A stretch of DNA of 64,000 bases. Origin: Dendrobates tinctorius. Lineage: Eukaryota. Each line of letters starts with the position of its first letter. The stretch's first letter is position 1. The notes below the pieces were generated by a model. The model searched no databases, was not told where the DNA came from, and saw only the letters and a list, made by a program, of their open reading frames with translations. The stretch spans positions 21,886,001 to 21,950,000 of the forward strand of contig NW_027361770.1 of NCBI RefSeq assembly GCF_039654945.1, written 5' to 3'. Positions 45,474 through 48,400 of the stretch are shown here, piece after piece. The position numbers and the translations under genes are program-made.

Positions 45474-48400
45474 ATGTCTTCAGAATCAGAGTATTCCCCA
45501 TCGCGGCAGGAATTGGCGCAAGCAGACCGTGAGGTGATTATTTTCGTGCATCTGGTAAGTATATCTGCTGCTTCTCCAAATCTCTTACGTTTTTTTCAAC
45601 TTTTTTAAGACATCGTCATCATCATCTTCTGCGGACGGGACTAGTGAGGGCGAAGAGCAGGAGCAGCGAAGCCAAGTCCCGGTGGTGATACGGAATGTAA
45701 GTATCAAATGATTTGTAATGTTCTTTATTTTTTATCTTCTATTTTTACTCTTTTTTATGTTTCTTTTTTTGTAACTTTTTATTCAATTTAAATTTGATTA
45801 TTCTAATGAATGTGTTTTGTCTAGGTTCCACAACGGGATGAAGACGTCTACCTGGATAATGAGCAGCTCATCAGCCTGGTCCAGGAGCGTTCGCTGTTGT
45901 GGGACAGCCGTGACCGGCTGCACAAGGACATTGTGGTGACCCGGCGGCTATGGAATGAGGTGGCCGCAGCGTTGATGGATGGCTGGGACAGCGCCACAGC
46001 ATCCTCCAAAAAGGCGTTTAGTGAGTATTTCCCTGCTCTGTATTGTGCCTCAGTGACTGTTGTCCTTGACGGCACTGTTGGGTTTCGTGCTAGGCGTATT
46101 CTAGCAGGAAACCCAACAGTGTCATCGGGGTCTACAGTGACTGCTTTGAGTATTGTATTGCTACATTGTGCCGCAGTGACTGTTGTCCTTGACGGCACTG
46201 TTGGGTTTCGTGCTAGGCGTATTCTAGCAGGAAACCCAACAGTGTCATCGGGGTCTACAGTGACTGCTTTGAGTATTGTATTGCTACATTGTGCCGCAGT
46301 GACTGTTGTCCTTGACGGCACTGTTGGGTTTCGTGCTAGGCGTATTCTAGCAGGAAACCCAACAGTGTCATCGGGGTCTACAGTGACTGCTTTGAGTATT
46401 GTATTGCTACATTGTGCCGCAGTGACTGTTGTCCTTGACGGCACTGTTGGGATTCGTGCTAGGCGTATTCTAGCAGGAAACCCAACAGTGTCATCGGGGT
46501 CTACAGTGACTGCTTTGAGTATTGTATTGCTACATTGTGCCGCAGTGACTGTTGTCCTTGACGGCACTGTTGGGTTTCGTGCTAGGCGTATTCTAGCAGG
46601 AAACCCAACAGTGTCATCGGGGTCTACAGTGACTGCTTTGAGTATTGTATTGCTACATTGTGCCGCAGTGACTGTTGTCCTTGACGGCACTGTTGGGTTT
46701 CGTGCTAGGTGTATTCTAGCAGGAAACCCAACAGTGTCATCGGGGTCTACAGTGACTGCTTTGAGTATTGTATTGCTACATTGTGCCGCAGTGACTGTTG
46801 TCCTTGACGGCACTGTTGGGTTTCGTGCTAGGCGTATTCTAGCAGGAAACCCAACAGTGTCATCGGGGTCTACAGTGACTGCTTTGAGTATTGTATTGCT
46901 ACATTGTGCCGCAGTGACTGTTGTCCTTGACGGCACTGTTGGGTTTCGTGCTAGGCGTATTCTAGCAGGAAACCCAACAGTGTCATCGGGGTCTACAGTG
47001 ACTGCTTTGAGTATTGTATTGCTACATTGTGCCGCAGTGACTGTTGTCCTTAACGGCACTGTTGGGTTTCGTGCTAGGCGTATTCTAGCAGGAAACCCAA
47101 CAGTGTCATCGGGGTCTACAGTGACTGCTTTGAGTATTGTATTGCTACATTGTGCCGCAGTGACTGTTGTCCTTGACGGCACTGTTTTTCTTTTATCAAC
47201 AGTGGACAAAGTCCGAACACGTTGGCGTTCGATCAAGGACCGCTTCAACAGTGATGTTCATGCTGAGGGCCAGGTTCGCAGTGGATCTGCGTCAAGGACC
47301 AGAACTAGATACCGTCACTATAACGCGTTGCAGTTCCTAAGACCGGTCCTTGCCACGAGATCGTAAGTATTATAAATTTTGGGTTTTTATTTTTATTAAT
47401 CTGTGTTTTTCTAATCCACAGCTGATGCTTCTTGTAAAGGCATGGTAGTAATGATTTTCCTTTCTTCAACAGCACCTGGAGCAGCACCCTGCAACCTGGC
47501 CCTGGAGCGGTCCTTCCTCGGACGTCCTCTGACCCGTCCCAGCCATCCGACAGCCAGGAAGCACCTTGCAGGTCAACCACACACACAGCTGGTGACCAGG
47601 AATCTGGGCCATCAGGTGTTCCCCTGTCCCAGGTCTCTGCCACTGGTTATGCGTGCACTACCCACCAGCGGCAGAGGGCCTTGGACAGGAATGTCTTGCC
47701 CGAGTTTATGCATTTGAGCGAGACATTTAATTCCAGCCTCAAGTCACTGTCCGACAGAGTTGAAAGCGGTTTTGCACTCATGGAACGTGGTTTTAACCAC
47801 TTTGAACACCGCTTCAATTCTGTAGAACAGCGCCTTGACCGTCTGGAGGCCGACCTCAACAGACCAGCACACCATTTTTTTAGTAAGATTGAAAAGGGCA
47901 TGGCGGAACACCTTAGTCCTGATCAACAGCTGAATGTGCTGCAGGCCTGCAACAATGCTTTCTTGCAGGCTATGCAGCATAATCGGTACGGTCAGCAGTC
48001 AGTGGTGTCCTTTCCACCTGTGCCACCATTGACTCGCTTCACCTCACTACCGACTTGTGCTGCATACCACTGCACGGACACCTCTATTCAAAGCCAGGAC
48101 ACCCACCGTTACACCACCACAAGTCTGAGTGCAGCTGGTCACTTCACCGACACCACCATGGCAAGCGCTGCTCCTGTCTGGAGCACCACCGCCACTCCCA
48201 TGCATGCGTGGAGCTCAGCCACCACTAGGCAAACATGGAACAGCCCTGCCGCTACAACAACGTGTAGTAGCCCTGCCACCACCACTCTGCAAACCTGGAC
48301 CATCACTGCCGCCACCAGTCCTCCTGCAAGGACGAGCACTGACAACGAAGAGCAGCAGCAGCAGCCACCTCAGCAGCAGCTCCAGCCACCTCATCAGCAG

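Follow-up and report, generated by a model that had tools for sequence, protein, structure and literature searches.

The Harbinger element and the array in its MADF gene

The stretch of Dendrobates tinctorius DNA analysed here (the window: 64,000 nucleotides, contig NW_027361770.1 of assembly GCF_039654945.1, positions 21,886,001 to 21,950,000) contains a PIF/Harbinger DNA transposon of about 7 kb on the + strand (window positions 44926 to 51958), which carries a DDE_Tnp_4 transposase gene and a second gene encoding a MADF DNA-binding protein. The MADF domain is split by an intron of 1182 nucleotides (nt; 3 x 394), open in frame, which starts with GTGAGT at 46021 and ends with CAACAG at 47202 of the + strand. 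The exon located upstream (45825 to 46020, +) codes for the first half of the domain (positions 1-37 of Pfam PF10545, E = 1.2e-05) and the next exon (47203 to 47362, +) for the second half (positions 44-84), the Pfam matches themselves covering 45825-46019 and 47205-47360. The last coding exon (47473 to 48598, +) encodes a coiled middle part and a Q/P-rich tail, and its translation matches the NCBI protein models P0004, P0008 and P0011. P0011 and P0012 are full-length relatives.

The intron contains a tandem array. Tandem Repeats Finder (TRF) detected a single array on the + strand from 46042 to 47186, with a period of 123 bp, 9.3 copies, 99% matches and no indel, in which each unit is made of about 30 nt of intron flank and an imperfect palindrome of 93 nt. 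The final partial unit (47149 to 47186, +), made of the flank and the beginning of the left arm, precedes the polypyrimidine tract and the AG. A read-through open reading frame (ORF) crosses the array from 45897 to 47366. A preliminary description of this DNA had presented the intron as nine 123-bp units, separated by a few single-base differences and each folding into a stem with 35 Watson-Crick pairs, 3 G:U pairs, 5 mismatches and a 7-nt loop. These statements are in agreement with our results: the borders were correctly placed, a Pfam half lies on either side of the array and the nine units vary at five positions in all. In the minimum free energy (MFE) structure, the stem has 44 positions (35 Watson-Crick, 4 G:U and 5 one-by-one mismatches) and a 5-nt loop, an equivalent count since the MFE structure closes one extra G:U pair at the loop.

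On the + strand, the first hairpin of the array (46051 to 46143) folds with -62.7 kcal/mol (z = -11.4, 0 of 200 shuffles as good) and the full 123-nt unit with -69.5 kcal/mol (z = -9.6); the - strand folds are weaker (-49.6 and -55.2 kcal/mol, respectively). A stable hairpin was obtained per unit (z about -10), as had been announced, and folding of the whole intron revealed that the arms of different units can also pair, so that the local hairpins are one of several possible structures. All nine hairpins are matched by the covariance model R1, and the 123-bp unit has no further occurrence within the 64-kb window.

At its ends, the element bears the terminal inverted repeats (TIRs) GGCTGGTTTCACATTTGCG and its complement; the neighbouring trinucleotides, TAA (left) and TTA (right), each fit TWA, the 3-bp target duplication expected of a PIF/Harbinger transposon, but are not identical. 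The 19-nt TIR (44926-44944) is identical at the 5' ends of the related subfamilies L001, L005 and L007, though the MADF proteins of these subfamilies are only about 50-80% identical. The transposase gene, in two ORF pieces (51237-51647 and 50242-51141) on the - strand between 50242 and 51647, is convergent with the MADF gene, and its piece 50242-51141 matches DDE_Tnp_4 (E = 4.7e-27) and Plant_tran (E = 1.3e-11) in Pfam. A DDE transposase accompanied by a second gene for a Myb/SANT/MADF-like DNA-binding protein is the composition of a PIF/Harbinger transposon.

Further repeats were noticed in this element and in L002, a copy of the same family on another D. tinctorius scaffold. The Q/P-rich MADF tail is built by a coding repeat of 18-21 bp, CAGCAGCAGCAGCCACCT, present in about 11 copies (48351-48558, TRF), and its length varies between copies of the element. 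Where the MADF and transposase genes converge, their 3' ends are separated by another palindromic array (48986-49862), with a period of 268 bp, arms of 116 nt and about 3.3 units; its unit is found about 1.25 times in L002 (9301-9616) and is unmatched in the remaining seven loci, although several of these may stop short of this region of the element. The L002 Harbinger copy has, close to its 5' end, about 38 copies of the telomere-type repeat TTAGGG (5248-5484) and a 40-bp tandem repeat of 7 copies (5525-5805), the unit of which matches bases 315-335 of the 5' subterminal query taken from the window (about 45240-45260). Elsewhere in the window, the segment 36001-38000 has a GC fraction of 0.079 and is probably a run of N (gap or masked).

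Copy number and ancestry of the hairpin unit

The unit is not limited to the Harbinger copy of the window. L002 contains 8.3 units that are 98% alike, and the NCBI models of other copies occur in two forms: P0011 and P0012 join ...KKAF directly to MDKVRTRW..., precisely where the splice sites are predicted, whereas P0001-P0010 read through the array and translate 1 to 4+ units. Arrays of 2.3, 3.3 and 4.3 units are found among the read-through models, 2.3 being the commonest, so that the copy number extends from 2.3 to 9.3 units. The same 3' partial unit and boundary are present in all copies of the window's family, and the read-through models all end with ...CAAVTVVLDGTVFF.PTVDKV. Units are uniform within the window array and within that of L002, and the two arrays are distinguished by fixed differences (CGT vs TAT at the loop CpG, G89C and C123T), while the variant T22G is present in 5 of the 8 units of L002. 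Private mutations of single units (units 1, 4 and 9 of the window, units 5 and 7 of L002) are located mostly in the stem, where they break pairs; the sole private change that creates a pair is in unit 5 of L002. Among the window and L002 units, no sign of selection on pairing or copy number was detected at this recent time scale. Head-to-tail units within the 10-150-bp range, copy-number differences and homogeneity within arrays with a partial spread of variants are the features of a minisatellite, and on this evidence the array behaves as one, evolving by slippage or unequal exchange.

To trace the unit further, loci of increasingly distant MADF proteins from D. tinctorius, Ranitomeya and other frogs were compared. 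The sister subfamily L001, with about 78-81% amino-acid identity in the two MADF exons, has an intron of 361 nt at the same position, in which two hairpin units are offset by exactly 123 bp, are 89% alike and are followed by an apparently degenerate partial unit. This offset indicates that the 123-bp duplication predates the split of L001 and the window family, and 2.3 units was probably the starting state of the array. Six other subfamilies, namely L004 and L005 of D. tinctorius, L003, L006 and L008 of Ranitomeya variabilis and L007 of R. imitator, show 52-66% identity in MADF exon 1 and contain a single hairpin in an intron of 155-167 nt (about 157), mostly not a multiple of three. The single hairpins have a stem of 33-43 pairs and, in five of the six, a 4-nt loop, the MFE loop of L008 being 15 nt. 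Over its full length, the single-hairpin intron can be aligned, in the same order, with the beginning of the intron of the window; the 123-bp unit is therefore equivalent to one hairpin together with about 30 nt of the intron beside it. In the more distant Harbingers of Anomaloglossus baeobatrachus, Bufo gargarizans and Leptodactylus fuscus, an intron is present at the same place and no hairpin was found in it, by covariance model either. As judged from these alignments, the unit descends from a lineage-specific intronic hairpin which was kept paired, and partly conserved in sequence, in at least eight Harbinger subfamilies of two frog genera.

The array could also have been a protein-coding repeat, as its frame is open and NCBI models include its translation. 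Pfam yielded only summed spurious matches with no single stretch passing, and single-hairpin introns are mostly not multiples of three; this interpretation is disfavoured for both reasons and was rejected. Model P0060 (L004, 8686-8842) reads through a single-hairpin intron, which there is 156 nt long and open in frame. The array being translated in many copies (P0001-P0010, and P0060 for the single-hairpin intron), the NCBI protein set is inflated with artefactual repeat proteins. Five host-named models, P0020, P0150, P0174, P0179 and P0191, also match the Harbinger MADF protein; their names are VEGF-C, bZIP factor, ZCCHC10, glutaminyl-peptide cyclotransferase and protein kinase, and they are probably chimeric gene models or exonised copies of the transposon.

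The fate of the pairing during divergence was analyzed on an alignment of ten hairpins, including two L001 units and two window-family units, for which RNAalifold gave a consensus of 28 pairs. Standard pairs occupy 88% of the cells. Shuffling of the 3' letters lowers this share to 73.5 +/- 1.7%, with the observed value attained in 0 of 500 shuffles, and only 27-48% of the cells pair when the partners are slid by 1-3 columns. Changes on both sides were counted at 16 of the 28 pairs, for 8.7 expected, and compensated pairs are also present among the six single-hairpin subfamilies. The covariation suggested by the preliminary description as a check thus holds in part: both-side changes are observed between Harbinger subfamilies, in the single ancestral hairpin, whereas the recent mutations of array units mostly break pairs.

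Sequence conservation was measured as mean pairwise identity among the six single-hairpin subfamilies. The left arm reaches 0.76 and the 5' flank of the intron 0.70, followed by the right arm (0.66), the loop (0.59) and the 3' flank (0.59); in the neighbouring exons, the values are 0.76-0.80 for codon positions 1+2 and 0.60 for third codon positions. Taken in its entirety, the intron shows approximately the same degree of conservation as the exons, and a part of it, one arm included, is on these values conserved like coding sequence.

The sense strand folds better in five of the ten hairpins (L008, both L001 units, the window and L002) and the antisense strand in four (L003-L006), L007 being a tie, so that no consistent strand signal emerges. 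In the alignment, G:U and A:C cells number 18 and 11, respectively, a difference which is not convincing, the rows being related. The G:U bias on the transcribed strand, which had been pointed out in the window, is confirmed for the window family and does not extend to the older single hairpins; it is therefore a property of that family and not of the conserved element. Failing across subfamilies, a strand-specific G:U enrichment was rejected as proof of a role at the RNA level.

Transcription, splicing and retention of the array intron

The expression of the MADF gene was examined in Logan contigs of three RNA-like runs (X1-X3) and one DNA-like run (X19), placed on the segment 45250-46164, which includes one unit. 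In X1-X3, the two upstream introns are skipped at GT..AG joints (45531 to 45608 and 45696 to 45825) and the depth is zero in the bins 45715-45807, as expected of RNA that contains little DNA or pre-mRNA. Contigs crossing the 46020/46021 boundary were found in the three runs (X1 record 8, 46006-46121; X2 record 23, 45932-46076; X3 record 31, 45975-46069), and X1-X3 contigs also cross the unit-unit joint, from 46164 back to 46042. Co-transcription of the array with the DNA-binding gene, as had been proposed, is borne out by these contigs, which run from the exon into the array and over the joints. Other RNA contigs match up to 46020 and then pass into TGGACAAAGTC, the sequence of the next exon from 47203 onward. 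Taken together, both sets of contigs imply that the array intron is spliced and that, unlike its neighbours, it is also frequently retained. Retention leaves the frame open and interrupts the MADF domain, and the hairpins persist uncut in the assembled RNA contigs.

Double-stranded RNA of this kind had also been suggested as a decoy for ADAR, with A-to-G editing as the expected trace. No A>G difference was found inside the unit in the RNA contigs, a weak negative as contigs drop rare variants, and the three differences within the unit (46050, 46091 and 46130) are common to the DNA-like run; ADAR editing was on this basis weakly rejected. Local folds gave no support to the idea that retention is caused by the last partial unit pairing with the 3' splice site. 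In the DNA-like run X19, contigs join 46020 directly to TGGACAAAGTCCGAACACG... and the upstream exon to 45825, suggesting either that the genome contains processed, intron-less copies of the MADF gene or that X19 includes RNA.

Origin and possible role of the hairpin

These results make it probable, in our opinion, that the array grew in the manner of a minisatellite from a conserved intronic palindrome older than itself, rather than being a demonstrated microRNA (miRNA) cluster. A dendrobatid Harbinger lineage carries one hairpin, with a stem of about 40 bp, in the MADF-splitting intron of about 157 nt; as the subfamilies diverged, its pairing was kept through substitutions in both arms, and its 5' arm stayed conserved well above third codon positions. 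The hairpin and about 30 nt of flank were duplicated in tandem, with a 123-bp period and probably about 2.3 units, in the common ancestor of the window family and its sister subfamily. Copies of the window family later expanded to 3.3, 4.3, 8.3 and, here, 9.3 units, presumably through slippage during replication or through unequal exchange at the palindrome; the length of the array is apparently not under selection. The enlarged, strongly structured intron is spliced at the predicted sites in some transcripts and often retained in others. As for the ancestral single hairpin, we infer that it is a functional cis element of the transposon lineage, most likely acting as a pre-mRNA structure which modulates the removal of the intron of the DNA-binding domain; the main rivals of this role are a neutral palindrome maintained by replication and a small-RNA precursor. 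The broader proposal, in which selection would have maintained an RNA hairpin in dendrobatid Harbingers, either as an intron-removal switch or as a small-RNA precursor, older than the Dendrobates/Ranitomeya split and multiplied to nine or more copies in one family, is put forward tentatively and with more doubt than confidence. In the literature on Harbinger hairpin or miRNA arrays and on poison-frog Harbingers, no description of such a feature was found.

Several points weigh against this interpretation. Palindrome conservation can come from template-switch correction without selection (PMC8794818). Several rows of the covariation alignment are related (the two L001 and the two window-family units), so the independent events are fewer than the counts suggest. 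Contig depth is only a rough guide, and retention could simply follow from the length and structure of the intron in the window family. A small-RNA role of the array stays as a secondary possibility.

The neutral explanation, which we hold to be unlikely, states that the palindrome arose once and was kept near-perfect by template switching or quasi-palindrome correction, the same instability yielding the tandem copies without any function. It is compatible with the absence of strand bias, with the near-perfect palindrome of L007 (41 Watson-Crick of 43 pairs) despite a divergence of 20-30% in its surroundings, and with one L001 unit that looks corrected relative to its neighbour at three mismatches; there are moreover documented cases in which template switching gave rise to hairpins and preserved them, with seemingly compensatory changes (PMC8794818, PMC10710096). 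It is a serious rival as far as the maintenance of pairing is concerned. However, arm-to-arm correction alone is insufficient, because the left arm and the 5' flank exceed the identity of third codon positions, and the fixed mismatches persist unchanged through the 17 units of the two arrays, so the correction is inactive on that time scale. A DNA-level cis element, whether a binding site or internal terminal-repeat-like sequence for the element's own transposase or MADF protein, or a nested miniature element, would account for a palindrome conserved within the transposon lineage and symmetric between strands, but seems very improbable to us: the arms resemble the highly conserved TIR of the element no more than shuffled controls do, the hairpin is not bordered by a target-site duplication, and every match of the covariance model in 225 kb from three species falls in the MADF-splitting intron. 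The proposal that the arms are internal copies of the TIR was rejected, the local alignment scores being no better than those of shuffles. A dispersed miniature inverted-repeat transposable element (MITE) amplified only in this copy, the alternative named in the preliminary description, was set aside as well, since the unit is absent elsewhere in the window, is confined to the intron in the 225 kb and is present in other Harbinger copies, with no duplication beside the hairpin and with arms unlike the TIR.

The preliminary description had proposed, among other possibilities, an amplified small-RNA cassette. In this model, the hairpins would be cropped or diced, from the pre-mRNA or from the retained-intron RNA, into miRNA- or small interfering RNA (siRNA)-like molecules, amplification raising the dose. 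Such RNAs would target the element's own family (self-limitation) or host or competitor targets. Stable hairpins transcribed in sense with the MADF gene, a stem conserved with compensatory changes across subfamilies, a 5' arm more conserved than the 3' arm and loop, as in many miRNA genes, and the better folding of the + strand in the window family are all compatible with this model, and new miRNAs often arise from intronic hairpins (PMC10710096). On the other hand, the Microprocessor prefers a stem of about 35 bp and an unstructured apical loop of at least 10 nt (PMC10710096), while the stem of 43-44 positions is here 8-10 bp longer and the loop of 4-7 nt much shorter, and no CNNC was seen by eye in the first 16 nt or so past the stem in the window and single-hairpin introns. 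The middle of the stem is conserved among the six single-hairpin subfamilies, but only some half of its positions recur in the L001 and window families; with only about 11 of 22 aligned mid-stem positions common to the window family and the single-hairpin type, there is no conserved seed. In the window and four related loci, the best Rfam scores on both strands are 21-30 bits for thresholds of 90-97, i.e. a quarter to a third of the threshold, and a known RNA family was consequently rejected, as was a mirtron in view of the approximately 35-45 nt that separate the hairpin from each splice site in single-hairpin introns. The lack of strand preference over all subfamilies, the uncut hairpins in the RNA contigs and the recent unit mutations that break pairs do not favour processing either. 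The layout thus resembles that of a miRNA cluster, but in these comparisons its geometry, seed and family assignment lack the features which define one, and we consider the cassette improbable.

If the hairpin is functional, this would be a rare cut-and-paste transposon carrying its own structured RNA element, which could tune the amount of intact DNA-binding partner protein or produce small RNAs, and which bears on the self-regulation of active transposons in poison frogs, whose genomes are very large and rich in transposons. Should it have no function, the locus still offers a clean natural example of a palindrome that was long kept paired and then seeded a tandem array. It would also caution that arrays of hairpins about as large as primary miRNAs, here with a longer stem and a shorter loop, can arise as minisatellites.

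The closest comparison for the retained intron is the third intron of the P element, the regulated retention of which is obtained through protein binding near the 5' splice site. In both cases, retention affects a single intron of a transposon gene, the others being spliced out, and the protein is changed; the mechanism relies on a bound protein in the P element, whereas a structural cause is inferred here. The internal minisatellites of DNA transposons share with the present array head-to-tail units of about 100 bp, a variable copy number, homogeneous arrays and the spread of variants within an array. They differ from it in that the unit is here a long palindrome, derived from a hairpin conserved across subfamilies and genera, and in that the array sits in a spliced intron inside a DNA-binding domain. 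Intronic or tandem miRNA clusters are represented by mir-17~92 and by the tandem mir-430 array of zebrafish. Tandem hairpins located in an intron and carried by one transcript are common to polycistronic intronic clusters and to the Harbinger array, which has a longer stem, a shorter loop, no conserved mature sequence and no Rfam match. The hairpin RNA loci of Drosophila, some of them made of tandem hairpin repeats, reportedly yield endogenous siRNAs (as described by Okamura et al. in 2008). Tandem long-stem hairpins in one RNA and a fast evolution of copy number are common to both, but those are host loci of an insect with a dedicated Dicer-2 pathway, while the present array is owned by a transposon in a vertebrate and known from sequence and RNA contigs. 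Small interfering RNAs suppressing selfish elements, and the RNAi pathway of the Drosophila testis as a rapidly evolving one, are the subject of PMC12697358.

The siteRNAs of Xenopus (PMC3875865) also concern a frog, introns and transposon-derived sequence as a source of small RNAs; however, they are 23-29 nt long, mostly antisense to transposon remnants in introns of host genes and not derived from hairpins, and Harbinger is without mention in the main text of that paper. Finally, the hairpins created by template switching (PMC8794818, PMC10710096) are, like this one, lineage-specific and intronic, with near-perfect pairing and apparent compensatory changes. Here, unlike in those cases, one arm is conserved above the neutral proxy and the hairpin persists over several subfamilies, suggesting that more than mutation alone may have shaped it.

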